The position numbers and the translations under genes were made by a program. Below the pieces are notes generated by a model that saw nothing but the letters and a program-made list of their open reading frames with translations, had not been told where the DNA came from and did not search any database. A stretch of DNA of 64,000 bases from Magallana gigas (lineage: Eukaryota), in the NCBI RefSeq assembly GCF_963853765.1, contig NC_088854.1, positions 25,482,001 to 25,546,000 on the forward strand, given 5' to 3'. Of this stretch, positions 1 to 47,777 are shown piece by piece. Within the stretch, counting starts at the first letter, position 1, and each line of letters begins with the position of its first letter.

Positions 1-387
1 TTTGGCACTAGTCATTTTGTCAAAGATATTAATTTCTATGGTTTTCATCATTTGTAAACAAATACAAGACTCAAGCTTTGTTTACATTACAATGATTTCT
101 TACGTCTGCATCTCGCTTGTAACTTGACTTTTAACATTCAAGGTTTTGTCAATCATTCAAAATGCACGAGTTTTTAATATTTTAACTAAAAAATAAACAA
201 ACTTTTGATCTAATCGTGTCTAGATCCCTTTAAATCAACTCGAACTTTCAATCCTTACAAATTTATTAATTTTGTACCCATATTTTCTATGATTGTACAT
301 GTATGTAGCTCCCTTGATCTCCTTTATTTAAGTATGTCATCTTATTTGCACTTCTTACCAAACTAGAAATCAGGATATCAATTACAG

Positions 388-3300
388 GTCCTTAAAAACC
401 TGATCAATGCTTCGCTGGACCAGGCAGAAACTGACGAGTATCAGACCATTGCGTTTCCCGCTCTTGGGACTGGCATGTTGGGGTATCCGACAGATAGAGT
501 CGTAGAAATCTTTTTTTCTTGCTTAGAGCACGCCTCAACTCGAGCCCAGTCACTAGAGGACGTTTTCCTCGTCATCTTCCCAAAGGACCGTGATACATTC
601 AAAGTAGTAACATTACTTATATATGTGTTTTTCAGTATCGTTTTATATATTAATCAGAATGATGATGGTTTACTAGAAATTGATATACATGTACAGACCT
701 TTTAAGTACATTTAATATTTAGAACACATAAATCTCTCTAACGCAGTTTTTTCTGCAAACAGATATGTAATCTTATACAATTGTCACTGTTTATGTATCC
801 CAACCCCATATCCTCTTGCGTAAATATCTCAGTTTAAATTGCAACTATATTTATCTATATTTATTACGAAGTAGTTGACACGAATATCCGTAATCAATAA
901 ATCAACAAAAGCACGTTTTTTTTTCAAAAATGAACTCAATGTCTACCCAAGTTATTCGAGTATAATCTGGGATGGGACAGTTTACGCATTTTGTAAGGTC
1001 AAGCGCAATATTAGTACGCTTTTGACGTTGGTGCATTGTGACATGTCTTGTGACCTGCAATTATACAAATTAAATAATTTTTTCTATCCAATCAAATACA
1101 GCATTACAACCAGATTTAATGTATATGCGATTAGACGTTTAACTAATAGATACATAGAAATCTTGTTTTGCAATTTGTAAATTTGAATTGTCTATTTCAG
1201 AAATTTTTGACTGTGGCTAAGGCAAAGACGGGTAAGATAATGAGACCTTTTATAATCTATTAAAAGTAGAATCAGCATATCATACATTAGTTAATTCTGA
1301 TTTTATAGCTAATTCAAAAAAAAGAAAGTATGGTGGCACAAGAATTGGGAATGTTAATGTTAAAGTGGTAGTTGGCGAGATGAACAAAGTAAAGGTACGT
1401 GGATGCTAGTTCATTTTCTCCAAATAAAAATTAGCTGTTTCAACTTAACATCAAGTATTTGATATTGTAATGCAAGATGAAAAAAAATTATTACTGATTG
1501 AAAGCCGTTTATATAAGGCAGACGTCATAGTATGTAGTGGACCGACTGACTTGCAGCTGAGCAATAAAGGACTGTCACAATCCCTCTCAGACGTAGCAGG
1601 GCCAGAAATGCAAGATGAACTAGACCAAAGATACCCAGATGGTATTGAATATGGAGAGTTTGCTATCAGCAAGGGTTATAATCTTCCATGCCGATATGTG
1701 TATCATGGGGCTCTACCAAAATGGTCAACAACGGATCCCGATCCCTCTTTCGTAAGCATGTTCCATATTTTTATCAAATAAGATCGTATATCCATTGTAA
1801 ACATTTCTTGCTCTTTGACCTTTTTTTCTTCTAATTAGGTATAATTTTAATTTTTCAGACAATGGAAGAGCTAATAGACAACTGTTTGGAAACAGCGGAC
1901 CGTCACAATACAAAAACAATAGCCTTTCCTACGCTTGGGGTTGGTTCTTTGTTATATCCTGTCGAGGAATCTGCCCAGCTAATGGGGGAATGCATTAGAT
2001 ACTTTTGCACAAATCATTCTGGAGTCAACATCAAAACAATAATTATAGTGGTGTACAGAGGCAGTTCGAACTATGCAGATGTCTTTGAGGTAGATATAAG
2101 GAAAAAATCGTTCAAATAACATACTATAGTACTAGAATATGTTTTGATAATACTAATAAATGCAAATTGTATTTTAAGGAGTTTAAAAAAGAATTGTCAG
2201 GAGGACCATTGGCTGCCTCTGGATCCCATAAACTTCAGGGTGCTTAGACTTTTTTGTATTTGCTAGTTTCAAATAACTTGGTCATTCTAATTTAAACTTG
2301 ACAAAAACAGTATTTGACGCTAAAGGCTTAAAGTTAAGAAATGTGCAGCACTTATGCAATAACAGACCAATTATGTTAGGGTTTCTTTAAAGCAAACACC
2401 TTGACTTCTTAATCTGCACAATATAGAAGTGACATTCTCTGTTTGAATCTCATATATTTGATACATAACCTGAGGAAACTTTCTATCGCATACACTTGTT
2501 TATAAAACGGATAAAGATAAGTGTGTTCCGAAACATTTCGTGTTTCACATCTGTGATGATTGTTATTTTATAATAAATTCATTAAAACTGGATAAATTGT
2601 CGTACACTTAATATTTGACCACTCCTCCAAATGCAAGTACGAACTTTTAATCAGTCCTTATAAATTGATTTGATAATCGGATAATATTTTGCCACAAATA
2701 AAAATAGCTTATGCACGATGTACATTTGTACTTATTTATAGTTATCTGATTTCTTTATTAAGCTTTACCGGTGACTGTCGTATCTCGACAATCCCATTCT
2801 GAGCAGATTGGTAACTTAACAGTGTCCCTGCATGTTGGGAACATAACTGAACACCAGGTGATCACCAGACTCTTGTATTATAACGAAACTCCATGTTATG
2901 AATTTCAATTTATTCTTTAAAAAAATACACTAGTTTAAGTATGAATTTTTTCAACCTGTCGTTGATATAGGTAGACGTAATCGTCAACAGTGTGGGGTCC
3001 GATTTCTCCATGTCGTCAGGGACGGCGGCGGCCATTCAAGCAGCCGCTGGACCCGGACTGTTGGGAGAACTGGAACAAAACTACCCAAGGGGAATCAAAG
3101 AAGGTCAAATCGCTGTGGCGAAAGGCTCTAACCTGAGATGTAAGGAAGTGTTTAATGGAACTATCTTGCCATGGTATTCAAAACGTTCTTCAAATGTCAA
3201 ACTTCCGGAAGAGGCAAGTAGTGAGCATAAGTAATGTCTTCAATTAATATATGTTGAAATATTGTAATTGATGTCTTAACTTTACATCCAATTAATTATG

Positions 3301-4988
3301 AATCAAAAAATGTTAGATTTTGGAAGAATTTGTGAATGCTTGTTTGGAACAAGCGAACAAAAGAAATCACAATTCCATCGCTTTCCCGGCACTCGGAACC
3401 GGTTATCACAAGTTCCCTGCAGATGTAGCCGCAGGAAGCGTTGTAGCAGCCATTAACAGATTCTCAGGCCAACAGAAACAACAGAATATTAAAGACATAC
3501 GTGTTGTATTGTACGGAGGAAGCAATGATTTATCAACATTGGAAAAGGTTGAGTTTGTTTTAATAACAATTATAAATATGGGTACATATAAGGGTATCGT
3601 TGTATCAATTAAAGTTGCAATGCCAAGTGAAAGCGATCGTTCAGATAAACTGAAGAAATTGTTTTATTTTTTAAAAAAATGAATATTTTATACATGTACC
3701 TGTGTAAGTGTCAAAATGGCGCATACATCATGATTATTTACGTAACATTTACAGGAATTTAAGGACACAATAAGTCAAAGCTCCTCAGGTATGAATTATA
3801 ACAAAGAGACGGTGTTTTTATCTTAACATCTTACTAATAAGAATTTCAAATAGTTGAAAATGAATTTAAAAACAAATTTGTACGTATACTTACATTTCCA
3901 AATGCATGTTTCTTATAACCCAATCTCGTTCAGGACGAAATGCTATTAACAGTCCGGTACCTGTTTCACCCGCTGTTAGATCAGTACCACGTAGAGGTAC
4001 TCTCGCTTATCTTCAGCACAAGTGCACTGAGTCTCAAAGGACACCCTCTTACTGGACGAAAATCACCCCGAAAAAATCTCTAAAGGATTGGAATCTGCAA
4101 GAAAAGTCGGGGAAATATTATTTTCTTAATCTTGACAAGCAAACTTACAACTGTATTGAAAATGCTTTCCAAAGTACAATAGGACATACAAACGCGCAGG
4201 TTGTTAGTATTCAAAGAATAGAAAATGCTTCTTTGTTCATGAAATATGGAGATGAGTGTCAGAGATTATTTCGGAAAGTTACTGTCGAGGGTACTTTCAA
4301 ACCGCCAGATAGAATTCCACAATCTTATGGGCCAGTAAAAGTGATGTCGTTTTTGAATCAACAATTCAAAGATCACACCCATTCCGAGATCAACGAGTAC
4401 TACTTTTTTCACGCAACAAAACCTGATCTTGTGGATGTCATTTGTGGGCAAGGGCTTGATAGCAGATTAGCAAATGAAAGAGGGAGACTAGGGACAGGGG
4501 TGTACGGAGCCGAGGAAGCAAACAAGTCGCACCAATATGCAGGTATCTCATATTAGTAATTTAATTTTGTTTGGTTAAAAGACAGTGTTAGAAGGCTTAC
4601 ATTGTAATTGCTCAAACTTGGGGCTCTATTCTTTACTAAGTATGCTAGTAAATTTTTTTGGTGAATTCTTTTCAAAATTTTGACATTGATATTATTGATT
4701 CAATACCACATACATATGATGAGAAACTATTTCTTTACAGGTTGTGACCAGCAAAACCGTTATCCGATGTTTCTGGTGCGAATGGGACTAGGAGACATTT
4801 TTCTGACTCAGAAAGAGGTCAGATTCAAACGTCCTCCGTGCAAAGTCTGCACCACAAACGTGTGCTTGAACCACCAAGAACTTCACGATAGCGTAATGGC
4901 CAATGGTGGAGCTTTTTCCCACCGAGAGTTTGTGGTATACGACAGAAACCAGAGCTACCCGGAGTACCTGATTTGGTACACTGTGTAG
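388..4988 (+). CDS. Macrodomain-PARP paralog A (PARP14/15-like architecture; at least 3 macrodomains, the first partial, plus ADP-ribosyltransferase domain); 5' end lies outside the window
   Basis: Exons read by hand, all in frame: 388-603, 1201-1231, 1309-1394, 1518-1751, 1859-2089, 2179-2239, 2763-2857, 2971-3213 (GC donor), 3317-3547, 3755-3788, 3934-4542, 4741-4988 (TAG). Macro motifs DVIVNS and IAFPALGTG occur repeatedly. PARP motifs: YFFHAT, GTGVYGAE..KSHQY, HREFVVYDRNQSYPEYLIWY. Confidence 0.92.
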
Positions 4989-5671
4989 GTTAAATCAAGA
5001 CTCCTTGTGATAGATAATGATAGAGGTTACGTAACAAATTTACTCATTGAAGTGTTGACTGTGTAAATAAGTCTTTGATATTATTTTATTTACACATAAA
5101 TTGACCATTAGTAAAATGCACATTGATTGTTGTTGACGAGGTTGAAGTTGATTTTAATTATTGAATGTGTGTGTTTGTGTTTTTAAAGATTACTAGTATA
5201 TTATAAAGGATTATATACCCGGTATCATGTAGCATACATCATTAATTTTTTCCCTTATCGATCACATGTAGTGTTTTACAGATTATTACGTAAAGGTTTT
5301 CTGGATATTTTTGTTCATTTCATTATCAGAAAGTACATCTCCTTTTTCTACTGTCAGTTTTACTTATTTAAATTCATTTGAATTAATTATAGATGTATTA
5401 AAATTTTAAAATACTATATTGTGCTAACTGCAACTTTCCTAATACTTTTTTTAATGAAGACGCGAGATTATTAATAATACAGGTATTACAATATATTTAT
5501 ATTTTTTCAGTGTTTTGTGATAACATTACGAATTGAATTTGTATTGTAGAGTTCAATAAATTTTTATGGCGTAAGCGGCGTTTTTATAATTAAGAAAAAT
5601 GAAAATCACATGGATATATCGGTAATTTTAATATTCAATCGTACAATTGCTGAAAATCATGTAAAAATAAT

Positions 5672-5822
5672 GAATAAGGAATCATTCTTTAAATATTATG
5701 AGGTGATCAAATACGGTCGGGCGTGATTAAATCTATCACAGCTCATTTTAGGCTTTATTGAATTTCACCACGCCCCGACCAAAATTATCACCTCATAATA
5801 GTCAAAGAAGGATTCCTTATTC
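5672..5822. mobile_element. Long imperfect palindrome, probably part of a non-autonomous (Crypton-like) element
   Basis: GAATAAGGAATCATTCTTT..TATTATGAGGTGAT..GGTCGGGCGTG pairs with CACGCCCCGACC..ATCACCTCATAATA..AAAGAAGGATTCCTTATTC. The family assignment is from memory only. Confidence 0.55.
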
Positions 5823-6576
5823 CTTACATTCAACTAAAAAATTTATTAGTATTGTTTTGGTACTAGTAATGCAATCGACACACTGGATGGAGCATGTGAA
5901 TCCATCTTCTTTCAAAAATCTCACTCTCACCTTAATTAGAGTCTATAATTTGTGTATTCTTAATTTAGGTTAATCAATTTTATAACAGTTTGAATGATTT
6001 GAGTTTATAAAATCAATAAAATGCTTTTCAAAGGTTCATATGCTAATATATAAAGGTATGGAACACTGCAGAAAAATATGCTACTGTAACTGTGTTAATT
6101 AGAGGCCGTTTGTGTAATTCCTATTGCAATGACTTCTATTTTTTCATACAGTCAGTTTGAATACGCAAACTTTCTTTCATTACTTTATTAGGAGGTATGA
6201 CAGAGTCTTTCATGCACTGGTCTTGTCAGCAATTTCAATAGGAAGAATCAATTTAGTTTTTCACATATACTTAATAACATTACTTATATTTCGAGGAAAG
6301 TACAGGAATTGCTTATCATTCTTACAATAAAAAAAATATTTCAATGTCATTACTTATGTCTATGCTTAAAATTGTATGTATATCCTGTTTCAAGAGATCC
6401 GTAAGGAAGAAAACTACTCGTGAAAAATGGAAAAATATTAATGATCTCCTGATTTCGAAAATGCGGAAGGATATTTGGTCGTGTTGTCAAAACTCCATAA
6501 ATAACACGGCTTTTGATACACAGCTGGGGAAAATATTTTAAAAAAGAACAAACCTGTTGCTCGTATACCCGTAAGA

Positions 6577-9500
6577 ATGGCGTGTTATTACGTCCCTCGA
6601 AGATCGATGCTGGGATTCGATTCCTCCGATTCTTCTTCGGAATATGAAGATACTGACGAAGAATGTGAGTACTATATAGACCATACACAATGGCACATGC
6701 ACTCATGGCAAAATATGCACGTCTGCTTTAATTGTAAGTAGGATATAAATGTCAACTGAGCTGGTGATTCGATGTTTCCATTGTGGCAGGGTAATGTAAA
6801 CTAACTACAACACGTTTTATTCAGTCGTTTGCCGATTCATTCATTTCTATTACTGAAAATACCCCGGTTCATTTATGTGTCTGTTTTTGGATGTTTTCTC
6901 ATACTTTATACTATACAAAAGTCATGTTTACTAATTTACCTGCACGTTACATATTAGGTTCATTTACATTAATCATTCAAAAAATGATTTCGTCATGTTT
7001 AATCATATATGTTGTTATGATAACCATATGACAATATAATCTGCGCAAAGCTAAATAAAACCCGATGCTTCAACGGTAATGCGTATAAGCTTCATATACT
7101 TCACATCTATTTTATAGAATATATATTTCTTTTTAATTTTATCCAATGAATTTGTTGCGCTGTTAATTTCTATTAATCAACTAACAACAAACACATTCAT
7201 ACAAACATATTCAGAATATATAACATGGCTCAGAATAGCATACCAATACAATGTTGGGTTCATACCAAACACGAATGTAATTTTGTATCGCACATACTGT
7301 TTTGCTATTTTATGCCTATATATACAGGCCTGTTATACCTATGTTTTAAATGTATTGAATTGGTTTATTTAAAAGTGAAAATGCTCATCAGATGTTCATT
7401 ACAATATGCTATCCATAATTAATGTATATCTACGGCATTTCATTTTTTTCAAAAAGTACTTCTTCTAAGACTTGTTCAGTGGTTCGTAAAGTACGATATT
7501 GAAATAGATAGGCGTCAATAATTCCTGACCGTGTTGTGTTATATCATCACATCATACACCTAAATATTGCAGCTCATTAACAAATATTTCCCTGTCTACT
7601 TAAAGTGCACAAATGCAGTGAAACACTATGCATGAAAATAGACAGTCAACGATATTTCATGGAAAACAGCTTTAAATGAATTTTGAATTTTATAATTATT
7701 TTTTTTTACAGTTCGACAATTAAATATTTTCTGTGTAAGTCTTTAACCCATAATTCTTTAATATCAGATGGGTAGTAGGAGCAAGTCCTCCTTCATGCCT
7801 TTAGTCATAATCTAAGATAGGTTAGTCCTAAGTGAATCTTGCACAATCGTATTTTTAATAAATTTAATACATTACATTAGTTTAGATATCTCGATTGGTT
7901 TGAAAACTCCACACAAATAGATGGCAGTTAGCAGTGGCGTCGGAGGCAAACGTCGGAGGGGGGGGGGGGGTTAGACTTTTTAGAAATCTTGACAAGCAAA
8001 AAAAAAAAAGCTAAGCCCCTCGCCCCCTAGCCCCCCCCCCCCCCCCCTTTCGGTTCCGGCGCCTATGGTTAGCTTGATCATAATGTGGGAGATAATATAG
8101 AATTCATCATAAATAAGCTATAAACTTTTGAACAAGGTCATTCAAAGAATACTTTGTATCACTTTAATTCGATGGTTGAAACCGCGGCGGCAATTTGTTG
8201 TTTCTTTTGCTTTAATGTTATTGTTTTTTGGGGGGGTTTTTTGGTGACCCAATCGCGGTTGTACTACGATTTCCTAAGGCGTCTGGCGTTGGCCAAACTG
8301 TCTTTATATTTGGACTGCAGATGAATCTGCATTGCCTGTGCATTTTTACATCATATAAGGTTCACAAATGAAAGATTTTTTACCCATGCAATGTACTAAA
8401 GTTGATTTAAATCTTTTTAAGCCTCTTCCGAAGAATCCGATGGCCTGGGAGAAGCGACATACTTAACATCCAAACATTCCGTTGGAACAAGTTTTCAAAT
8501 TGGTCAAACAACTGTCATTATTGTCGCTGGGGATATCGTCCACCAACCAGTTTGTATTTTTAGATAGGCATGGTTTCGAACCAAATTTAAAATAAAGCGT
8601 AATATCATGATGAATTTCGATTTCCCGTCTTCACAGTGCACCCATTAACAACTTTAGTCACAATGGGTTCATCTTTGATATACTGGGTATTTCCAATTTG
8701 ATGTTAAATTGTTGGTTTCACTTTTGTTTGTGCTTGACAAACGTGATTTTGGAAGAACTTAGACTTGAAAAATTCATTCAACGACAAGTTTTGATGTGTT
8801 GGTTTTATAATTTTTTGATCACTTTATGTAGAATCCTAGTATTTCAAACAATCTTTCAATCATTGTCGAAATCTGTGAATTTGGTCTCCCTTACTTTTTC
8901 CGTTCAATCATTAAGGTGGATGTAATTGTGAACAGTGCAAATCCCAATCTCGATCTGACCCAGGGGAGAGCATCGAGTTCCCTCCTCGCGGCGGCAGGGC
9001 CAAGGATCCAGAGGGAGTGTCAACAGAATTATCCCCGGGGACTCAGGCCGGGGGAAATCGCCGTCACGTCCGGGGGAAATTTACGCTGTACCGCAATCTA
9101 TCATGGTGTTCTAACCAGATATTCATCGCAGCGGGATGAAAAAGTAAGTGGACATGTCTGCTGTACAATTAGATATACGTTCCTTTTGGAAGGTACTTTA
9201 ACACCAAATTCCCCTTACCCAGCATTACAGCCTCAGGTAGTTCGTGTTTTGTTGCGACGTCATGCACGTTGCATAAACATGTGGCTTACGTACGATAAAA
9301 TGTTTTTCTATCATGCAATACCAATCGTTAAAACAAAAGCAACGTCAGCTGTAGACATTCGGAGTTTGACAAAGTTTAACAATTTTTTAACAACATTTCG
9401 AGACATAACTTATGGGTCCTCAAATCACCTGGGAAAAGTTCCGCATACAAACCCGAACTTCTTAATTACTAATACTTAAAGATATGGATTCATGAAAACA

Positions 9501-12000
9501 TCTGTTCGACTTGAAAATGACCGAAAAAAAAATTCATTTTGGGAGAAGAAATCAATTTTTAACAAGAGGCCCATAGGGCCACATCGCTCACCTGAGCAAC
9601 AATGGGCGTTCAAAAGATATTGTGCCATATGGTCCCTCGGTAGAATAACAAAAAATAAATACTGTAAAGTATTCGAATTTTACACTTATTTTTGCATACA
9701 CGTAATCTTTGACATTGTACCTTCATGAAATACTATTTTTTACCAGAATAGGAAAATCCTACGCAAGATATAAAACTAAACATTTGGTAGGGGTACACTG
9801 TTAAGTTGTTAACTTCCAATTCTCTATATTTTCGTTTTGCCCCCCCCCCCCAACTTTGTAAAGCGATCAAAATATATGAGAGCATATAGGTACATTTTTT
9901 TCATCAACTACTTACTAGTTATTGTATTTTTTAAAAATATATAATGGTTATTGTATTTTATTTAAAAAATCCTACATGTATAAATGTGAAGAAGAAAATT
10001 GTACCTCAATGTGCTCAATTCCTCAAATTAAAAACATTCAAAAATTTAATTTGTCTTCTCCATTATAATTAAATTACTGTTATTTACCTCGCATACAAAC
10101 CGGGATAATTTTCCGCTGTGATATTTTCTTAGGAATAGCGATAATTACTTTATCCCCGCAACATAAATGTGTCAGAACTATGGAAACTGTTTTAAAGATG
10201 TCTTTTTTATTTACTCGTGTCTGAAAAACTATCAAAATAGATGTAGATTTCACATTATTTATTGTGTAAAGAGGGGGCCCCAGAGAGTAGGTATATACAG
10301 AATATCATTCTTTTATTTTGTTTGTACAAGTATTTAACATACTCTAATTCATATAGAATTTCTAATGTTCAACCAAAATTTCAGCGTCAATCGTAGAATT
10401 ATAAGCAAGATACAGAGCTCACAGTTTGCCTAGGTTTGAGTCATATTTTGTTCACATGAGTTTATTACATTCAGCTTTAAGATTTTCAACTTGGTATTTT
10501 CTATTTAGCATTTAAAATGGAAAAAAAGAATGGCCTCAGATTTTCAAATCTTTTATTCACTCAAGACCAGTTCACTGGTATTTGAGGTTCAAAAGCAGTT
10601 TATACAAATGTACACAAACACAGTCAAGGATCACATGTACAGCAGGAGTAATAATGACGAAAAAAGGTTAAGTTTACAATACAATAAGTTGTTAAAGTTG
10701 GTTTCTGGAAGAACAGACTTTGAAAATTTTCTTAATAAATATTCAAATTGACAAATTTTTTACTTTTTTAATCTTTAGTTTTTAAGATCTGTGTACAAAC
10801 ATAGAATTGTGAGCAAATCTCTGTATATTGATTATCATTCGAAGCTTAACACTCAAATATGGTTAGTAAATAGAAATTGTAAACAATTAAACACAAGAAA
10901 CATGCACTATAACAAATAAAGAACACAATTAATTTTTTCGAAATGAATCATATATAGACATGTATATATCTACATATTTCCGTCAGCGATATCAAACTCT
11001 ATTTAAACTGAATAAACTCGAGAAAATGCCGAGCATCTCAACAAAACCTATTGCATTAATCTACCAATACGCAAAAGATAATGCCGAATTACCGATATCA
11101 GTACTTTTTTTATACATACATACATACAGATTTTGCTTAATTTGCGCAGGTAAACAGTTAACTGTTTGATTTACCGAAGTCTCTGTTTGATTTGATACGT
11201 AAAAATCACGAAATACAGACGATAGTTCCCAGGTTACAAAGCATAATTAATGAAAACGAAACGAAAATCAGAACAAGCTAACACCAACGTCATGTGTGAA
11301 AACTGTCAACGCATTGAAATATTTAGCCTCAATTTACTTCACAAAATCGGCACCAATATATTTTGCATGTTTCAAAAATTTCCCTTCATACGCGAACTGT
11401 TGCACAACAAGCAAATTCATCATAGTCAGATCGACCCTTTTTCTTATAATGTCATGGCTGCTTTAAACAAAGAACCTCGTTTTAGGAGTATGGAATACGA
11501 GTCTTGGTAAAATGGGTATGCAAACCCGGGCCGTGGCAAAATAAAAGCCGGGGCAGATCGGCAATTCCAAATACACATTATTTTGCAGCATTATTTACAG
11601 CGAAAACAAATATACTGGTCCATCAAATATCCTGAAATTCTAATGAGATTGGCAGATTAATAACTGCCAATCTTTTGTTTTGCCCAGGCCAAGTCTTGCC
11701 TACCCATTTTACCGGATGCCGAACCCGAAGCTATTAAACTGATTGAAACACGCCTTTCCTTTATTATTATTTTCGTAATAACTCAGATTTGAAACAGAAT
11801 TAGCCCTTAATTTTTTTGCAATTTATATTTTCCTTCCCATAAGGATAATTTATGCTTAACTACGTTGAATTGGACTCAGTAGTTCTTGAGAAGAAGATTA
11901 TTAAAAATGCACACCACTTTTTTCTTTAGTTTCAAGGTTCTCTCCGCTTTGAATACAGATCAGACTTTTATTTCTGCAATTTATATTCGCCCTCCCATAA

Positions 12001-12032
<32 letters not shown>

Positions 12033-12130
12033 ATAAGCGGTTTTAGAGAAGAAGTTCAAAATGTAAAAAGTTTACAGACGGACGGACAGGCAGAGGGACA
12101 GACGGACGACGGACAAAATGTGATCAGAAT

Positions 12131-12164
<34 letters not shown>

Positions 12165-15100
12165 GATTGAACTATTATTCATGGAAATAAAAGTCCTTGC
12201 GTTATTCGAACTCGAGACCTGCAGATCGGTAAATTGAATTTTCACCCATTGCCCCACAGAGATAGACAATAAAATTTGGCAATATAAACTGTTTGATGTG
12301 CAATGCGTTCAAATCGCCATGTTGTGACGTACTGTCCTAAAAGGTAGAAGTCACGGGGTGTCAAGGATCCTTAACTCACTCTGCCGACATCAAATATCCG
12401 CCATTGTGATGTCAATAGACCCCTTCACAATAACTGCGGTGCTGCTCTCTTGCAGGGCAAAATGATATACTTAAAGTTTGCCGAATTTCAGTAGGTAGAT
12501 AATAAATGACGTAAATGAAAAAACTGACGTTACGTCATATTTCACAAAACCATGTCATTTTTCCCTGCAAAAGAGCAGTTACCGTGAAGGGGTTAATTAT
12601 TCCGACAAAATTAATTTGACTTAAAACCGTAAATCATACCAGAAAAATTTCTTGACAACAAAACAGAGGAAGCAAAATTTTGTAAAATGATTTTGCTTTT
12701 AAAATTGAATTTGCTTGTAGATTGAGTATCAACTCAAAATTGTACATTAAGATGGTATGACTGTATGCATTCATGAAGTTTAAAGGGTGTGCCCTATCGT
12801 TCTTGAATCAATTCAAAGCATAACTAGATTGTTTTTATATTAATTTGATTGCAGTTGTTGAGTGATTTGGTTTCTGAATGCCTGGATCAAGCTGATACAG
12901 ACGGTTACCATTCTATCGCCTTCCCACCGTTTGGGACCGGATACCTTTCTTATCCAACACCACGGGTCGCTGATATAATGTTAGAATGTATAGAAGATTT
13001 CACGTCACGAACATTGACAACTGTCTATATCGTCATCTACTCACAAGAAAGCAGTTGTTTTCAGGTAAACCGTCAATTTAAGGTTTCGTTTCTGTTATGT
13101 CTCCTGCAATTCTTATAAATCGGTATAAAAGAATCTAGGCCGTTTTTAGAATTTTAAGTTTTAAGAGAACAATGTCACAGTGACAAAGTCTGGTATAAAT
13201 CCACTTCATATGATAAATTCTTCTCAAATTAATTGATTTTAGAATCATTGCTTTTATCACTTAAAAAGTTCATAACTTTTGCACATTATACATGTAAATT
13301 ACGCATGGAAATTGAACCCTTTATTGCTTCATCTTTTTAATACTATATGAATACAACGTAGAACTTTTCTCTATTATCGTAAACAGGACTTTCTTAACGC
13401 TGCAAGTAAATGTTCATCATCTGCCCCATTACAGAGTAAGTATCACATTTATCTATATTTTCTTTGTACGCATGACCATGAAATTCCATTTCATAAGGCA
13501 TGGAACATCCCGGTTTTACTTCAATAACACACAGGTGTAGGCTGGTCAGCGGGACGTAGTCACCCACCAATAGCCAGTGGTTCTGGGGGTAGCGCTAGCA
13601 GTGTACGGATCGGAGCCATAAATGTACGAGTGGTAATTGGTGCCCTGAACCAGATAAGCGTAAGTTTATATATGTGGTGGTATCATAGAACCAGACAGTG
13701 TTAAGATGCGTTAAATCTTTCGTTCCAATATTTATCAGGGAAAAAAAGATTAATGTTTTGGTTTGGTTGGTAACGTAATGCCCCATCACACATTCACGGA
13801 TTAAATGCCGGATTAGCTACGGAAGCGATCCGGAATCATTCGTGGCGATATGTATTGACCCGTGGCTTTTCCGTCTGTTATCGTATCCAAACGTAGCAAT
13901 ACTTGTATAGCTGCGACAATTTTTGAACATGTTCAAAATTCCACTACGGATGAAACCACCGTAATACTTCCTTAGAAAAACTTACTAAACCGTTTTAGCA
14001 CGTAGAAGTCCGTTTTAACTCCGTATAAATCCGTAGTAATTCGTATGTATCAATTTGTATCCATTCCGTAGTGCATCCGTACTAACTCCGTATCATTAGA
14101 TTTTCCGGTGTCAACCGTGGAAAATATTCCGTAGTAGAACCTAGGAGTTGATCTGTGAATGTGTGACTGGGACATTATTAATTTTGATTTTCCGGTGTCA
14201 ACCGTGGAGAATATTCCGTAGTAGAACCGTGGAGTTGATCCGTGAATGTGTGACTGGGGCATTAAGCTTTCTCAAATACAACATGCAGATTTTTAAACGA
14301 AACATTAGTCATATTATAGTGGCATCCTCATCTCTCGCCATTCTTTCTGTAAATTATGTTACTGGAGCAAATTTTCTTGAAGCCACTTGCAAGAGATGCA
14401 TTCATGGTTTGATGAACAACATTTGCATCTTACATTCAGGCTGATGTATTGGCCCATTGTGCTCCAAAGGATCTTCAGCTCAGCTCTGGTGCCTTGTCGC
14501 GGGTTTTACTAAATGACGCTGGACCTGGACTTCAGCATGAACTTAGCAGTGTTGCAAGGAACGGAATCAATTATGGTTCAGTTGTCACTACCCAAGGACA
14601 CAATTTAAAGTGCAAATACGTGCTTCATGGTTCACTGCCCAAGTGGGGAACTTCCTCTCCAGATCCTTTGAAAGTTTGTTACTGCTACCCTACACTCCAT
14701 AAGTGAAAGCAATGTTAATGAATTTTAATTTTTAAAGTCTTTTACTTCAAATGCTTTAAAAAGCAAACTAAACCAAGATATATATACTTATAGTGTCTAG
14801 AACAATTTGTGTCCGGATGTTTGGAAACTGCAAACTTCAACTCCATGAGATCAATTGCATTTCCTACCCTCGGAATCGGTGCTTTAGGGTACCCAACAAA
14901 GGCAGCCGTTCAGGGAATGGTCCAAAGCATTAAACGATTCGCTCACAAACATCAGACGTTCCTCACAGACATCTCGATTGTAGTCTTTAGTGGAAGCGGC
15001 GACTGTGCGACCGTACAATATGTATGTGGACAGATGCAGTACTACTCTTTCCTTGCATGATATTCCTTATAGAATATTTAGTAGTAACATTATCATGATT

Positions 15101-17830
15101 ATACGCCAAATAAGGTAGTTGTAGCACTACTCTTTCACTTTCGTCTGTTAAATGAAAGGTATTAACTGCCTCTATTTTTCTATTTTCTTTGTATGTCTAT
15201 CAAAATGTCAGTCTTACCGTATTTTAATCTTAAAAATCAAGAATAAATTTTGGGTTCAAAAGACACGTAAATAAAAACTAAACATGGTAATTCAAGTACA
15301 TGCATCTGAAAACTGTTACAGGAATTATCAAAGGAGCTTGGAATTAGCATGGGTGCATCAGGTTAGTGAAAATTAATGATAATCCTCAAACCAAAAAAAT
15401 TATCCATTCAGTTCCAAACTGTAGAATCGATCTGATATCAGTAATATATATATTATTTTTTAATCAACCAAGGGTCAATATCTCATTACCCACCACCGAG
15501 TTCTTCTTCACAAGGGACGTCACGGACAGTGGCAGGTGGATCCATCAACAGAATCCCAGTCAATGTCGTAGTAGGAAGTCTATCGAATCAAAATGTACGA
15601 CATCAGCCTACATGTCACTTGAAAATTTCATCAGTATAATAATGAGCATTGGCGTTTAGTTTCATAAATGCAGAATGTATTGTCTATCAAACTGGATTCT
15701 TTTTTGTGAATTTGAAGGTTGACGTCATCGTGAACAGCGTCGGTCAGGACCTGGCCATGACTTCCGGTTCTTGTTCTGCCATTGTAGCAGCTGCCGGTCC
15801 CAATCTTGCTAAAGAGTTACTTCAGAATAATACCAGCCTTCCTTACGGAAAAGTCGCAGTTACCAAGGGTTACAACCTAAAATGTGCTGAGGTTTTCCAT
15901 GGGGCTTTGCTACCATGGTATTCCAAAGGCGCTGGTAACACGAATCAGCCGGATATTGTAAGCTTCCACAAATAGCATGTTCAGTGCAAAAAAAATTCAT
16001 ATATTGTACATATACTATAGTTCTATTTAAACTAAAAGGGTCCGTGATTATTCAGGTTCTTGAAGAGTTTGTCTATAAATGCTTGGAAAAGGCAATGTCA
16101 AAAGGACACAAAACAATCGCTTTCCCAGCTTTGGGTGCCGGAAATCTCAAATTTCCACTGAATGTAGCAGCTGCGTGCATGGTGGCTGGCATAGTAAAGT
16201 TTTCCAAGAAATACAGCATTGCCGAAGTTCGAATCGTGTTGTACGGTGGGAGCCCAGACTTACGTCAGCTGGAAAAGGTTTTTAGTATTTCAAGTCATTT
16301 TACATTGTATTTCTACATTTTATGACTGTTGTGTCTATGCACTTGAAAAAAAATCATATGATTTTTTGTTAAAATTTTTCGTATATTAGGAGTATAAAGA
16401 TGAAATATCACATCCAGGAAGAAAAGGTAAATAATTGTTTTGCATATATATATTGACTATTTTTTCAAATTTTCATGAACATAAAATTTTTTAACTTGAT
16501 AATTCAAAGTGTTGAATGAGGATATTTTGATAAATGGGTCTTAACGCATCTCTGCAGTGAATCCTGTTGGACATCCAGTCCCCCACAAACAGTCTCACCA
16601 GTACGCCGAACCCCTTCGTGGCTCACAAGACTGGTTTTCCTGGAAATATCGCGAGGAACTGAGAACACCAAAATACTGGACAAAATACACTTACAGGAAT
16701 ACTCTGAAGGACTGGAATCTAGACGTAAGGACACATTTTCATTCGTTACAACCTGTGGATCAAGTTGTGTCTAATTCGATAGCGGCAGCCTTCAAAAGCA
16801 CGATGGGTACGCACACTATCAAAAGTATTCAAAGAGTGGAGAATGTCGACCTGTTTCAGAAATACGCAGAAGAATGTCAGAGGTTATTCCGGAAAGCCTA
16901 CGTTGAAGGAAACTTTGTTCCATTGGATAAGATAAAGTCCTCACAAGGACCCGTAAAGGTAATGAAAAGGTTAGATCCTTCAATGACACAGCACACCTAT
17001 CCGGAAATCAACGAGTATTACTTTTTCCACGGCACGAATGCCCAGCATGTTGATGCTATTTGTTCTCAAGGATTGGACAGTAGGTTGGCCAACTCTGGGA
17101 GAGTTGGGAGTGGTGTGTATGGGGCGGAAGTGGCCTCCAAGTCCGCTGGCTACGTTGGTAAGCGTCAATTTACTTATATTTTCCAAACTTTTTTTCAAAA
17201 TTATAATCATGAAAACATAAGTCAAATATTCCTTTAAATAACCCGCTGGCCCGAGTGCGGATTGTGTTTGCAATGACGGCAAAATGGAGCAAAGTTCATA
17301 AAAATCTATACTAGTACGTGTAATACATTTTTGGGGGGTAATTTTGCAAAGATGGAAGAGCAGTGTAAATATGAGAGTGTTTGCTTTTATATTATTTTAT
17401 AATGAGCCATTTCATGCTGTCAACTTTTTAAATTCTTAATCAAATGACACGTGTGTACAGTTCGATATTCCACAAACATCTTATACATGTATAAGCTATA
17501 AAATTGTTGAGATATATACACAATTAAAAGATAATTTCAAATCGTAATATAAAACATACAATATACCAAAATATTGTTTTCCTAGGTCCAAACAGTAAAG
17601 GGGAATGTCCCATGTTCCTCATCAGAATGTGTCTTGGCGATGTATACTTGACTGGACAAGGAGGTAATTTCAAAAGACCGCCAACTAAGACAAATTCGAG
17701 CAAGGGTGGAGGAACCCAGCAAGATATGTACGACAGTGTAATGGCCAATGGTGGAAGCTTCTCGGACAGAGAGTTTGTGGTGTACGACAGAAATCAGGCC
17801 TACCCAGAGTACCTTATTTGGTATAAGTAG
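6577..17830 (+). CDS. Macrodomain-PARP paralog B (3 macrodomains plus ADP-ribosyltransferase domain, 931 aa)
   Basis: Exons: 6577-6664 (first exon inferred from ATG, phase-1 donor and acidic sequence continuity), 8422-8549, 8916-9143, 12855-13064, 13387-13435, 13535-13659, 14440-14673, 14794-15021, 15322-15361, 15473-15594, 15718-15957, 16056-16277, 16390-16426, 16558-17157, 17586-17830. Total 2796 nt, all GT-AG, same intron phases as paralog A. Motifs: GDI..VDVIVNSAN, FFHGT, GSGVYGAE..KSAGY, DREFVVYDRNQAYPEY. Confidence 0.9.
7932..8067. mobile_element. 136-bp MITE with CAGTGGCG/CGCCTATG termini and a 5-bp TSD (GTTAG)
   Basis: Imperfect TIRs CAGTGGCGTCGGA and TCCGGCGCCTATG; internal poly-G and poly-C runs; GTTAG at 7927-7931 and 8068-8072. 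Confidence 0.7.
9561..12164 (+). mobile_element. Helentron-type non-autonomous element (HINE-like) with satellite-like units and nested insertions, in intron 3 of PARP-B
   Basis: The 5' subterminal GCTCACCTGAGC (9586-9597) is the reverse complement of the 3' GCTCAGGTGAGC (12149-12160). Also present: a 3' hairpin AGCTCACTTGAGCT-TTC-AGCTCAGGTGAGCT, a GACG/GACA microsatellite at about 12077-12114, and two ~160-bp related units at about 11760-12070. That both ends belong to one insertion is inference. Confidence 0.7.
11506..11713. mobile_element. 208-bp foldback/MITE nested in the Helentron-like element
   Basis: ~36-bp imperfect TIRs GGTAAAATGGGTATGCAA.. and ..TTGCCTACCCATTTTACC; internal perfect 9-bp hairpin at 11647-11672. 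No clear TSD. Confidence 0.6.
12418..12594. mobile_element. ~175-bp TA-flanked MITE
   Basis: GACCCCTTCACAATAACTGC..TCTCTTGCAGGGCAAAATGA pairs with TCATTTTTCCCTGCAAAAGAGCAGTTACCGTGAAGGGGT. Confidence 0.65.
13776..14264. mobile_element. TA-flanked MITE with a tandemly duplicated right end
   Basis: Left TIR TAATGCCCCATCACACATTCACGGAT; right TIR ATCCGTGAATGTGTGACTGGGGCATTA; central palindrome ATTTTGAACATGTTCAAAAT; 79-bp terminal segment repeated at 14099-14177 and 14186-14264. Confidence 0.8.
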
Positions 17831-19564: not shown

Positions 19565-21533
19565 CTAAACTGCTCCTATAAATTTGACCTCCTTTCCAGT
19601 TTTTTGGAGCTCTGCCAACAACTCATCTGAGGTCATGGACGATGTCACAGTGACCTTCTGGTTTTCTACGCTAGTTTCCACATTTGTCACTTTGTCTGTA
19701 AACACAACAGAAAATGAATTCCTTTATATTCCATTCCACGTTTTCTAGATATCTTACAATAATTTACAATATTGAGTTTGCACTGTGTACATGCATGTAC
19801 AGTATAGACAAGTAGATGGAAAATAATGAAAATCCATTACTGTCAAATCTTAATGAACAAGGCATATAGTAAATAAATGATCACTTGAACTAAAATATGC
19901 AATGTTAGGATTCTGAATTCTGATAATTTTAATACAAAGAAGATCATAGAGGATTTAATTTTTACAATAATAGATAATGAAATATATTCATGTAGTATAA
20001 TTTCATCATAGTGATGGCAGTTATTTCCTGGTAATTCTGCATTGTTTCGTTAAATTAGAACAAGGAACAAAACATGAAATACTCTCTCTCTTATATTGTA
20101 CTACATAACCTGCATTATGAATTTTTTCTCTCACCACCTTCATATCCTACATGAATCGCCAAAGAAGCATTGAATTGTTGAAATACTTATATACGTATAT
20201 ATGCATGTAATTTTGATGGGTGAATGGTGAAAATTTAGAACATCATCACTGCACCAAACCGTGTGAAAAAAATAAAACAATGAGTTGTCTGTGTATTTTA
20301 TTCACTAATTAAAAGTGCATGCAAGTATATTCCTATATGGAAAACAAGTGAGATTTATACTTGGGCTTTCATGCCCTAGAAATTGGGTGCACAAATGACT
20401 GCATGCCCTTTTTGTCCCTCTGTTTATCTATCCCATCTACCTCTGCATATATTTTGTATGTGTTCCAGTTTTCTAAGCTTTTTTTTTTCATTTTAAATGA
20501 TGTTGTTTAATCTCTGCATGGTAAACAGAGTGATGGCAGAATTTGTTCAGAGTTGCATTTTTTTACATTAATTAATTAATCATTTTCACTTCATGTAATC
20601 CTCATACTTCAGAGAATCAAATTATATCTATAACTTTTCTTTTCAAAATGCATATAACATGAACATGATAGGTTAATTAAACTACCACTGATGTCTGCAA
20701 GTCATGGAATGGAAAGAATGTTTAAATTATCTAATATGAAACACCGGTCATATAAAATATTTTGTTACATCCTGTAATATATTTTATGACTCTTGTAAAA
20801 GTAAAGGATATAGGATGTCAGCGCAAATTGCACTATTTCTCTAATTTTTTTTATTAATACTAGATAACATGTAACTCAATCTGCAGCAATGGCTGGAAAT
20901 TTAGTTCATTTTTAAGCCTTCTGGCATAAAATTATTTCCCATCTCCCAACAATTCTGAATCTTTCAATCTTTTAAAATATGTAAAGAAAAGGGGCAAACT
21001 GTTTGAATGTGAAATAGCCCCCGTTTCATGAAAATAATTTAAACATACATGTGCATGTACATTCGTCCTCATGGATTAAGAAACTTTTAACTGTGAGCTC
21101 TGCACACTCAAATTTATATAAATTTAATTTTAATATGGGTATAAGGAGCTCGGTCTTAACAGACTTAGCTTATCTTTATTCTGGAGTCCTCCAGACATGC
21201 CTATCATTAATGTCATTCTATCTTGAAATAATAAAAGGTTTTTTTTTCTTTTACAAGTATACACATGTATAGAATAAAATTAATTTCTGCATGAACTACT
21301 GTTTTAAATGTTACAATTCACAGTTTTCCAAACAAAATTGAGTCACCTCCAATGAAGTGAAATACCTGGTACCAGTAGAGCTGCACATATGATAATTTCC
21401 TCAGTTTACAGCAACAAGATTATTTTTGTCTTGATGCAATCTTATCTATACATTAAAATGGATTTTTAGTGGATATATAATGGGAATTTTATCAAACTGT
21501 ATCTTGAATATATTAAACTGTGAAAATTGTACA

Positions 21534-21599
<66 letters not shown>

Positions 21600-24500
21600 A
21601 GCTAATTAAAGTTTGCAAGAAAAAATGCAATACAGAATTCAGTGCTGTACATAACATAACTTTGCACAACAAAACATCCTACAATCACAAGTTCAAACAC
21701 ATGCATTGCCATGCTAACAAAATAAAGAATGTGCCTTTAAGATAGCCAAAACAACTCTGCACCATGTACCATAAAATGCTGCCATGCCATCACAATTTCA
21801 CAGAACACATCCTTGTGCAGGCACAACTTTGCTCTGTGACTGTCACAAGAATAACTGTCACACCTTCACTTAAGACCACGGAACATTAACTGGCAAGATT
21901 GGAAATAGACAACTTAAGTCAATTTCACCTGTTACAGTCAAAACATTTGAAATGGGCGGGAACAAATTAATGCGGACGTCTGAGAAAACATTGGATTAAA
22001 ACTGCAGTTATAGGATGTGTATTTTCAATCCACCTCAGCATTTCTAAAACAATTGAAAAAATATTTGGTATCAACAAAGCCATTGTTAAACATTTTATTT
22101 AATCAATAAATATATAATTAGCAAATATGGGAAGATCCCACTTTGGGAGTGATTATAATACAGGAAAGCATCGTCTGATGACTTCAGAGAATCAGTCGTA
22201 CATGTACATTGTAACAAGTCTGAAATCAAGTGGGGCCATTGTTGAATCTGGGTTTATTCCCCAAGGGGAATAATTCAAATTCGGGTGATTAATTTCAAAT
22301 TTTATCCAGATAAAAACTATTTCTAAAGTTAATGTATATGAATAGATATGATATGCGCGTTCATTGTTTAACTAGCTAAACATGAACTTGTGACGAATGA
22401 TTTTTTAAAGTCACTGGGCAAAGCTTTGCCTTGCGTATGATATCTCCCAAATTAGGATCTTCTCATATTTGCTTATTATATACTTACATGTATTGATGAC
22501 ATAAAATGTTTATCAATCACCTTGCTGATACTAAAAAAAATTTCGATCGCTTTAAGTCATATACTTTAACAAGGTAGAAATGCTTAGGTGGATTGAAAAA
22601 CACTTTCTATCACTACAGTTTCAATCCAATGTTTTCTCAGACGTCCGCTTCAATTTGTCCCCGCCTATTTCAAATGTTTTGCCTGTAACCGGTGAAATTG
22701 ACATTAGCTGTATATTTCCAATCTTGCCAGTTAAGTTCTGCAGTCTTAACACATCCTATACCTATCTAAATTTTGGAAATTACCACAGCATAAAGTATTC
22801 TAGAGCTAAAATAAAAAGATAATCCTCACTCCCCTCCCTGATACATATGTGTGTATAGCGTAAAGTATTGTAGAGCTAGAATAAAAGGATAATCCTCTCC
22901 CCCCACTCTGATGCATGTGTGTATTCATTCATATGTTTGTATGTGTCCTTGCATATTTCACAAACATGAATAATACAAGAGGGCATAGTAGAATCACCTT
23001 ATTTGAGTATTTTTAAATCAATAAAGTACATTCACCTTATTTTTCAATGAATTTTATTAAAAACAATAAAATACTTTCTTAACGAGGCCGGGTCTAATTT
23101 GTTCTGCCCTAGATTTCTGAATGAATTTTTTTAAATGAATTTCTACTGATATAATTATTCTTTTAAGATTAAAAAATAAGACATTTACCACACCATTTGT
23201 TTAGGGGGTCATCTCAAAGTTAGTTAATCTTTAACATAGGACCCTATGGGATTTTGCATGAAATGTATCAATTTTGCAATTTTTTAAAAACTTCTGCCCT
23301 AGGGATTTCTTTTTCTGTTCTACATATCAAAGTTATTGCTAAAAGGCATCAAATGGTCAAATAAAAAAAACCTTTTACCTCCTGGTTTGTTCCAGGGGTA
23401 TTATCAAAGTTGTTTTTTGAATGCCTTATTTCCCAGATTTATCAGGTAATGGCTATTTTTTATTTGACAAAGGCGGAAATGGTGATCTTTATAGTATTAT
23501 TAAAACATTCAGACATATTTAAATAATAAATAAATATATAACATCACATATTAAGGGTCATTAATATAAAATACATGGTTGCTGTCTTGAAATATATATT
23601 AATTAAGCTATATTTAGGCGGGTTAAGAAATGGTGAAAGAGGGCTAGGCTTGCTGAACCCTCTTCGCGTTTTCGACACAAGTCCATATATTGCTTATACT
23701 TGGAGACATTTATGTTTATTCCACAATATAATATCAATTTTACGCATCAAACGAGCTATTTTCAACAAATTTCGCTGAATATCTGCAGTTGAAACTATCA
23801 CGCCATGGTGTCAACAAAGCAAAAAGATGACGTCACAATACAAATGAAACGCTGCGCGAAAGCGTGCATACTCGGCCTCGTTAAGTGGTTTATGGAAGGT
23901 GAAAAGCATTACAGGAACTGATGCCAGAGGGGAAATGATTTTCTATCTGCAATGATAGCTAATTCATCACCACAAGAAACTACCAAAAATCATTTTAATT
24001 GTTTACATTTACCTTTCTGTGAACATTTCTTTAATTTATTCAATATAGTGATTAAAAATTTGTAATGAATAATAAAGAATGGCAAATTATTCAATTAATG
24101 GATCATATTCTAGCTACACCTCTTTGTAAGTCTTATGTCAGTCACTGTTAGACAGCACTTCCAGATAGCTTTTTTAGAATGATCACAAAAGAATTTATGC
24201 ATAGTACATGTAATTCTTAAAACTTAAGGAATAACAAAAATGAAACAAATACCATTTCACAATAATTGGTACACATCATTGAAAATTGGTGCCAAGTTTA
24301 TCATGTTTATATTTATATGTGAGGAAATATTATCACTGTAAATTTGCTTTAGAAGCAACCCTCACGGATTTAAAAATCTCACATTTATTTTATGACCTTT
24401 GTAAATTACACCAATTTATAACAAAAGTTTATACCCAGTCAGAAAAGTTTATAACAAAAACTTGCACATGACTATAACATACCCCCAAGCTTGCCCAGCA

Positions 24501-47565: not shown

Positions 47566-47777
47566 NNNNNNNNNNNNNNNNNNNNNNNNNNNNNNNNNNN
47601 NNNNNNNNNNNNNNNNNNNNNNNNNNNNNNNNNNNNNNNNNNNNNNNNNNNNNNNNNNNNNNNNNNNNNNNNNNNNNNNNNNNNNNNNNNNNNNNNNNNN
47701 NNNNNNNNNNNNNNNNNNNNNNNNNNNNNNNNNNNNNNNNNNNNNNNNNNNNNNNNNNNNNNNNNNNNNNNNNNNNN
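47566..47777. other. Assembly gap (212 N)
   Basis: Run of N characters. Confidence 1.

Follow-up and report, generated by a model that had tools for sequence, protein, structure and literature searches.

Tandem macrodomain-PARP genes of the oyster Magallana gigas with a predicted glutamate-dependent ADP-ribosyltransferase domain

The window analysed here is a 64,000-nucleotide stretch of the 564-Mb genome of the oyster Magallana gigas (G000:C2:25482001-25546000), in which two genes, A and B, lie in tandem on the forward strand. Probably, they belong to a macro-PARP family that joins an array of reader domains of the PARP14 macro2 type to an H-Y-E ADP-ribosyltransferase (ART) domain, which is predicted to work by Glu-dependent catalysis. 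We use 'REF-type' as a working name for this family, after its F-R-E-F-V-V-Y strand. Textbooks and reviews describe the macro-PARPs, and all of Clade 3, as mono-transferases or inactive proteins that have lost the catalytic Glu.

Genes, transcripts and macrodomains of the array

An earlier note on this DNA had described two tandem paralogues at 3934-17830. They are indeed in tandem, but two further copies lie 8-26 kb upstream of the window, with ART exons at window -9631..-8358 (negative coordinates are upstream of window position 1) and at C2:25456110-25457205, so that the array consists of four genes. The end of the interval is that of gene B, which is complete in the window, with 15 exons at 6607-17830 (+) and an open frame of 921 residues. 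The start is not that of gene A: position 3934 is the acceptor of its first ART exon, and the gene begins farther upstream and is truncated by the window start. With the Saccostrea orthologue P0152 and P0155/P0156 as queries, tblastn located the upstream exons of gene A and put the first half of macrodomain 1 near -3881..-3648. The exons from 1518 to 4988 give an open frame of 661 residues with one GC-AG intron, and the protein is similar to the gene B product. A model of gene A with GT donors only had no open frame; two small exons from a cDNA contig and the GC donor at 3213 restored it. For the gene B product, we used P0155 (97-98% identical) as a stand-in. The features are as follows.

385..606, +, gene A, second half of macrodomain 1 (same tblastn queries, P0152, P0155 and P0156)
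1518-1751, 1859-2089, 2179-2239, 2763-2857, 2971-3213 (GC donor) and 3317-3547, +, gene A, macrodomains 2 and 3 with linkers (Pfam Macro, spliced cDNA contig L062, open frame)
3755..3788, +, gene A, micro-exon between macrodomain 3 and the ART domain (L062 alignment; required for the open frame)
3934..4542, +, gene A, ART exon 1, with the insert at 4287-4385, His at 4410-4412, Tyr at 4503-4505 and the N-K-S-H-Q-Y motif at 4521-4538
4741..4988, +, gene A, ART exon 2, with the Cys-x2-Cys-x4-Cys-x2-His loop RPPCKVCTTNVCLNH, Glu at 4926-4928 and the stop codon
6607-6664, 8422-8549 and 8916-9143, +, gene B, 5' exons with an acidic Ser-rich N-terminus and the first half of macrodomain 1 (match to P0155, open frame)
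12855-13064, 13387-13435, 13535-13659, 14440-14673, 14794-15021, 15322-15361, 15473-15594, 15718-15957, 16056-16277 and 16390-16426, +, gene B, remainder of the macrodomain array from the second part of macrodomain 1 to macrodomain 3, with linkers (GT..AG RNA joints, Pfam, PARP14 macro2 matches)
16558..17157, +, gene B, ART exon 1, with the insert at 16905-17003, His at 17028-17030, Tyr at 17118-17120 and the S-K-S-A-G-Y motif at 17136-17153
17586..17830, +, gene B, ART exon 2, with the acceptor loop without cysteines RPPTKTNSSKGGGTQQ, Glu at 17771-17773 and the stop codon

Genes A and B are intact and expressed. For eleven introns of gene B, including the one within the ART domain (17157|17586), the contigs of three RNA runs (two studies) contain the GT..AG joint, and four of these joints also occur in reads of one poly(A) run, with the first mates on the minus strand over the exons. 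One intron has two acceptors, both found in RNA contigs, 15361|15464 (GT..AA) and 15361|15473 (GT..AG). Use of the acceptor at 15464 adds 9 bases (3 residues) to the linker before macrodomain 3 and gives the 924-residue P0155, which is common to 101 transcriptome-assembly sequences. The UniProt entry K1RLU6 (Magallana gigas) matches at 92-100%. The exon chain of gene A is matched by the spliced cDNA contig L062, which comes from another sample and is 88-94% identical. This Logan contig (2221 nt) is called as two open reading frames, of 333 and 309 residues, with a break within the macrodomain 3 exon, for which either an assembly error or a frameshift in the allele or species concerned could be responsible; the frame of gene A in the window is open at this point. 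For the two upstream paralogues, the nonsynonymous (dN) and synonymous (dS) divergences are 0.13 and 0.95, a dN/dS ratio of 0.14, and all other pairs in the array are saturated in dS. The array members are old duplicates under purifying selection. Stop codons in two family matches from the genome scan were considered as a sign of pseudogenes and rejected, since the match runs into an intron there.

By Pfam, the gene B product has three Macro domains and one PARP domain, and no match to a WWE, RRM, ankyrin or SAM domain at E <= 0.001. Macrodomains 1, 2 and 3 each match human PARP14 macro2 best, at 59, 95 and 76 bits, which bears out the PARP14-style macrodomains seen in the earlier note. All three score well below this against PARP14 macrodomain 1, and macrodomains 2 and 3 also score well below it against PARP14 macrodomain 3 and the MacroD-type hydrolases. 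The three are closest, too, to the second macrodomain of the PARP14-type gene that the oyster itself has on contig 8. This macrodomain is encoded by two exons, with the split at a position similar to that in the macrodomains of the window genes. Since the alignments retain the adenine-contacting Asp and the A-F-P-x-x-G-x-G loop, and not the Gly-rich catalytic loop of MacroD, we read the three macrodomains as putative ADP-ribose binders, not hydrolases; the roles of these residues are those known from other macrodomains. Some unionid members of the family also carry a PARP14-type RRM (PF23085).

Several other features lie in or beside these genes. A macrodomain-like exon pair (L005) is present between the upstream paralogue and gene A, at about -6694..-6211, with a second piece of about 44 residues; it may belong to gene A as a further 5' macrodomain, or be an orphan remnant. 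The gene B intron contains, at 13786-14264, a repeated element with an RNA contig depth of up to about 1200, compared with 10-60 on the flanking exons. Its reads are from both strands and continue into unlike sequence, with one joint that goes back 171, and it is probably a transcribed transposable element outside the gene proper. Directly downstream of gene B is an acid ceramidase gene (19590-29577, +). The entry K1RLU6 (1022 residues, named 'Acid ceramidase') fuses the 3' part of gene B with this neighbour and is a mis-merged annotation.

The catalytic domain

The positions given in the earlier note for the His, Tyr and Glu codons are exact in both genes. In gene A, His 4410 is CAC (EYYFFHAT), Tyr 4503 is TAC (GTGVYGAE) and Glu 4926 is GAG (HREFVVYD); in gene B, His 17028 is CAC, Tyr 17118 is TAT and Glu 17771 is GAG. 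HMMER sets 'sdrEFVVYdrnqaypeyliwy' opposite 'spkLFVVFfdnqaypeylitf' of PARP15, with an identical Q-A-Y-P-E-Y-L-I tail. At this strand, human PARP14 has S-L-F-V-A-F and PARP15 has K-L-F-V-V-F, while the oyster tankyrase has 'PEYVVYRGEQAYPEYLITF', in which P-E-Y-V-V-Y is at equal spacing to A-Y-P-E-Y. The alignment opposite the Leu of PARP15 and PARP14, together with the tankyrase-like spacing, assigns the Glu of genes A and B to the catalytic column, in line with the tankyrase Glu, as the earlier note had proposed. To our knowledge, every vertebrate macro-PARP lacks the catalytic Glu. This part of the note also stands, with Leu in PARP14 and PARP15, and the PARP14-type genes of the oyster lack the Glu as well.

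The ART domain is recognized by Pfam PF00644, with 75.2 bits for P0155 against a cut-off of 26.7, and 35-47 bits for single-exon pieces. An AlphaFold model of the domain, built with 68 family sequences, has a predicted local distance difference test score (pLDDT) of 93.3 and a predicted template-modelling score of 0.92, and the Glu is the first residue of the strand 233-236. Foldseek and VIA-align gave the following structural neighbours, with Z score, root-mean-square deviation (rmsd) and sequence identity.

PARP15: Z 23.4, rmsd 2.5 Å, identity 33%
PARP12: Z 21.7, rmsd 2.5 Å, identity 28%
PARP14: Z 21.6, rmsd 2.4 Å, identity 29%
Tankyrase 1/2: Z 21.0, rmsd 1.7-2.1 Å, identity 29-31%
PARP10: Z 20.6, rmsd 2.8 Å, identity 27%

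The modelled domain thus appears about equally near to PARP15 and to tankyrase. A feature search of the ESM Atlas returned generic PARP clusters only.

The long insert that had been noticed before E-Y-Y-F-F-H is real. It separates the long helix from the His strand, is about 33-35 residues long (A 4287-4385, B 16905-17003), is modelled at pLDDT 95-97, is kept in the family consensus and has no counterpart in PARP15 or tankyrase. After the triad Tyr, both genes have a motif of the polymerase-style S/T-K-x-x-x-Y type, as N-K-S-H-Q-Y in gene A and S-K-S-A-G-Y in gene B. The same Lys-Tyr pair is present in the oyster PARP1-like protein (S-K-S-A-N-Y) and tankyrase (S-K-S-N-Q-Y), and in the conventional Clade 3 domains of this genome the Lys column is occupied by Tyr, Phe or Leu. 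Among the 209 family domains retrieved, Lys is found in 196 and the following Tyr in 206. We take these residues to be equivalent to K903 and Y907 of PARP1, at the nicotinamide/acceptor site. The family consensus also has R-P-P-C-x2-C-x4-C-(x1-2)-H in the acceptor loop, between the L-G strand and D-S-V, a motif that looks like a zinc knuckle. It is retained by gene A, by both upstream copies (C-K-V-C-T-T-N-V-C-L-N-H) and by most relatives.

The REF-type family and its relation to other PARPs

An exhaustive HMMER search with the first ART exon, run over 1.84 billion cluster representatives, gave only 360 proteins at E <= 0.001, and nearly every full-length protein among them has F-R-E-F-V-V-Y...C-Y-P-E-Y. 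The H-Y-E triad is present in 91 of 100 retrieved family domains. The oyster genome holds 15 REF-type genes, four in the present array, five in tandem on contig 3 and six elsewhere, all with R-E-F, the insert and a two-exon ART domain with the intron after the S-K-S motif. The five genes on contig 3 (G000:C3:19.69-19.76 Mb, L006-L010) have near-identical ART domains and are the top-scoring family members in the genome, which suggests recent amplification. The third triad residue of the conventional ART domains in the same genome is I, V, M or T. The PARP14-type ART (C8:10.51 Mb) scores 104 bits to human PARP14 over 98 residues, compared with 16-42 bits for gene B, and the PARP12-type ART (C7:47.93 Mb) scores 124 bits to PARP12.

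Against solved structures, the family profile scores highest with tankyrase-2 (99 bits), followed by tankyrase-1 (90), PARP12 (87) and PARP15 (76), and then PARP14 (66), ZAP (54), PARP10 (48) and PARP1 (47). The order for gene B alone is PARP15 (56 bits), PARP12 (53), PARP14 (42), tankyrase-2 (37) and PARP3 (30). A maximum-likelihood tree was calculated from 68 ART cores over 147 columns, with the conventional oyster domains and tankyrase stitched from exons and two bacterial PARPs as outgroup. Searches for homologous proteins returned family members and a few bacterial PARPs only, and the tree is therefore one of family, oyster and bacterial domains, with indirect human anchors through the HMMER scores against solved structures. 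The 12 conventional domains and 49 REF-type domains are split by a branch with 100/98 support. A position of the ART domain within PARP14/15 had been named beforehand in the earlier note as the outcome that would speak against a separate family; given this split from the oyster PARP14-type and PARP12-type domains, the domain is not nested there, and the sequences assign it to a family of its own rather than to PARP14/15 orthologues. Rooting with the bacterial outgroup puts the conventional domains and tankyrase within the REF family. We take this nesting as a long-branch artefact, because monophyly of the REF family is not rejected by the approximately unbiased test (p-AU 0.425).

Family members were found in the bivalves Saccostrea, Pinctada, Pecten, Ylistrum, Mizuhopecten, Mytilus, Tegillarca, Sinanodonta and Potamilus, and in the gastropods Biomphalaria, Bulinus, Physella, Lymnaea, Pomacea and Haliotis, where their NCBI names are 'uncharacterized', 'PARP14-like' or 'PARP15-like'. 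A distant relative in the annelid Dimorphilus (P0109, 1090 residues) has a weak macrodomain match and two ART domains, one with W-E-Y and one degenerate, with the Glu lost. The Branchiostoma members are short and consist of the ART domain only; they have R-E-Y, the insert and the cysteine motif and fall inside the family in the tree, and a protist transcriptome protein with R-E-Y is a more distant ART relative. The earlier note's suggestion of a lophotrochozoan family therefore holds for the combination of macrodomains with a Glu-bearing ART, which is documented in molluscs, with a weak macrodomain match in the one annelid. It does not hold for the ART subfamily, since the amphioxus members indicate that this is older than Lophotrochozoa, and the sequences point to an ART lineage at least bilaterian in age. 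Domain shuffling, also suggested in the note, is a plausible origin of the architecture, and the association of macro2-like macrodomains with an ART domain outside the conventional group fits it; the PARP14-type RRM in some relatives fits instead common descent from a Glu-bearing macro-PARP ancestor. Both P0109 and Pecten maximus P0162 (1421 residues) have two ART domains per predicted protein and could be fused gene models or real tandem-domain proteins.

In their overall plan, the oyster genes resemble PARP14 and PARP15 (Clade 3C, H-Y-L mono-ADP-ribosyltransferases), with a macrodomain array N-terminal to a C-terminal PARP-fold domain. The macro2-like macrodomains (59-95 bits) and, in some relatives, the RRM are shared with PARP14; by structure, the ART domain matches PARP15 best (Z 23.4, about 33% identity), and R-P-P, Y-D-S-V and Q-A-Y-P-E-Y-L-I are common to both. 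They differ from these proteins in having Glu for Leu at the third triad site, Lys for Tyr in the S-K-S column, the insert of about 35 residues and, in gene A, the cysteine knuckle, and no WWE domain was detected. The tankyrases (TNKS1/2, Clade 4) share H-Y-E, the A-E-x-S-x-K-x-x-Q-Y motif and the Q-A-Y-P-E-Y-L-I-T-Y tail, and give the top family-profile score (99 bits) and the lowest rmsd (1.7-2.1 Å, Z 21). The oyster genes, however, have macrodomains and neither ankyrin repeats nor a SAM domain, and the insert is absent from tankyrase. The zinc site of tankyrase, which can be seen in the oyster tankyrase, comes before the L-G strand, whereas the REF-type cysteine motif comes after it, in the acceptor loop. 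A realistic functional analogue is given by PARP3 and PARP4, which have the full triad without proven polymer synthesis, although they belong to another clade and have other accessory domains (WGR; vWA/VIT), and PARP3 scores 30 bits. The conventional Clade 3 ART domains of the oyster share the fold, and the PARP14-type gene also has macrodomains, the second similarly split, but at the third site they have Ile, Val, Met or Thr, neither the insert nor the Lys is present in them, and their scores to human PARP14 or PARP12 are 104-124 bits.

No paper on Glu-bearing macro-PARPs was found in the literature searched, and the REF-type family is a variant of the macro-PARPs without a published description in that literature. 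A 2010 family survey reports no animal Clade 3 member with the Glu (PMC2964712). A 2014 survey describes PARP14-like duplications in invertebrates, and the H-Y-E triad is discussed there for other proteins (PMC4245714).

Predicted activity and alternative explanations

As far as can be judged from the sequences, the triad, the S/T-K-x-x-x-Y motif and the ordered insert have been retained over very long evolutionary distances. On this basis, we infer enzymatic activity, Glu dependence and coupling of reading to writing. The macrodomains would dock the enzyme onto targets that are already ADP-ribosylated, and the ART domain would then move ADP-ribose from NAD+ to the target by Glu-dependent catalysis, in place of the substrate-assisted catalysis proposed for the mono-enzymes without Glu. 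The product seems somewhat likely to be a single ADP-ribose unit; an oligomer or polymer is conceivable, but we are doubtful of it.

Several points weigh against this interpretation. The placement of the Glu is based on sequence alignment and on the secondary structure of the model. In the window cluster, the triad Tyr is followed by Gly (G-V-Y-G-A-E), where the usual residue is Phe. The acceptor loop of gene B is T-K-T-N-S-S-K-G-G-G-T-Q, from which the cysteines are gone, unlike most of the family, so genes A and B may differ in function. PARP3 and PARP4 are H-Y-E mono-transferases, and the triad alone is no proof of polymer synthesis. Finally, the unsettled root of the ART tree makes a retained ancestral Glu and a regained Glu formally indistinguishable.

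Are these proteins true poly- or oligo(ADP-ribose) polymerases, in which the macrodomains grip the end of an ADP-ribose mark for extension by the H-Y-E domain, so that reading and writing reinforce each other in a cycle? PARP1 and tankyrase also combine H-Y-E with S/T-K-x-x-x-Y, a combination that the conventional mono-ART domains of the genome lack, and it is tankyrase that gives the top family-profile score and the lowest rmsd. We nevertheless regard polymerase activity as doubtful, because PARP3 and PARP4 have the same features and produce mono-ADP-ribose only, the acceptor loop is remodelled as a cysteine knuckle in gene A or a Gly/Ser loop in gene B, and both the fold rank and the single-sequence score prefer PARP15 and PARP12. 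Furthermore, PARP14 macro2-type domains are known readers of mono-ADP-ribose. An activity directed mainly at nucleic acid (viral or cellular RNA, or DNA ends), with the cysteine knuckle as the contact, is improbable. In vitro, RNA is a substrate of several human PARPs, PARP14 and PARP15 among them, the knuckle of the acceptor loop is CCCH-like, and there is a weak Pfam match to the Tpt1/KptA RNA 2'-phosphotransferase family (E 0.004); this match is, however, below the cut-off and overlaps the PARP match, and gene B has no knuckle.

Pseudogenes are frequent in tandem arrays, and the odd Gly after the triad Tyr and the lost cysteine loop of gene B would suit dead scaffolds or decaying duplicates, in which the macrodomain readers alone matter. 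The open frames, spliced transcripts and dN/dS of 0.14, the family-wide retention of His, Tyr, Glu, Lys and Tyr, and the confident ART model make this very improbable. Even harder to credit is that the genes are ordinary PARP14/15 orthologues, and hence mono-transferases, with a Glu at the third site by chance. The automatic NCBI names 'PARP15-like' and 'PARP14-like' on relatives, the PARP14-like macrodomains and the standing of PARP15 as best single-sequence and Foldseek match would agree with it, but the sequence comparisons already contradict it: the genome has a separate true PARP14-type ART, with 104 bits to human PARP14 against 16-56 for gene B, the tree shows the 100/98 split, and Pfam found no WWE domain in the gene B product. 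Moreover, the Glu is kept in 91 of 100 family domains, from molluscs to amphioxus, and so is not incidental.

If the preferred interpretation, a macro2-type reader array joined to a Glu-dependent ADP-ribosyltransferase, is correct, macrodomain reading and Glu-dependent writing would coexist in one animal protein. The REF-type family would also be a natural contrast for what, besides the Glu, divides mono- from poly-transferases, and would bear on the timing and frequency of Glu loss in PARP evolution. A bolder proposal, which we offer tentatively and think unlikely, is that this lineage never lost the polymerase-type site (Glu plus Lys/Tyr), extends the marks that its own macrodomains read, and was expanded in molluscs and lost in vertebrates. 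It would then be a reader-coupled writer of oligo- or poly(ADP-ribose), with 15 genes in the oyster. Oysters have no interferon-type adaptive layers, yet they suffer herpesvirus epizootics. An expanded oyster ADP-ribosylation family may therefore be a reasonable candidate for a part in innate defence, although an antiviral role would be suggested by analogy only. In one study of the oyster herpesvirus, the antiviral effectors with differential expression include a 'PARP14', which is listed among the induced ones with no gene identifier in the text, so that the entry is not attributable to genes A or B (PMC12803857).

The remainder of the window contains some minor features. The window start (1-238) has about 234 bases of a dispersed repeat that recurs on all large contigs, in dozens of copies of about 80% identity. 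At 47566-47777, 212 consecutive N mark an assembly gap or a masked stretch. At 21527-21600 there is a (CT)n/(GA)n microsatellite, which gives long SLSL/ERER pseudo-open reading frames.

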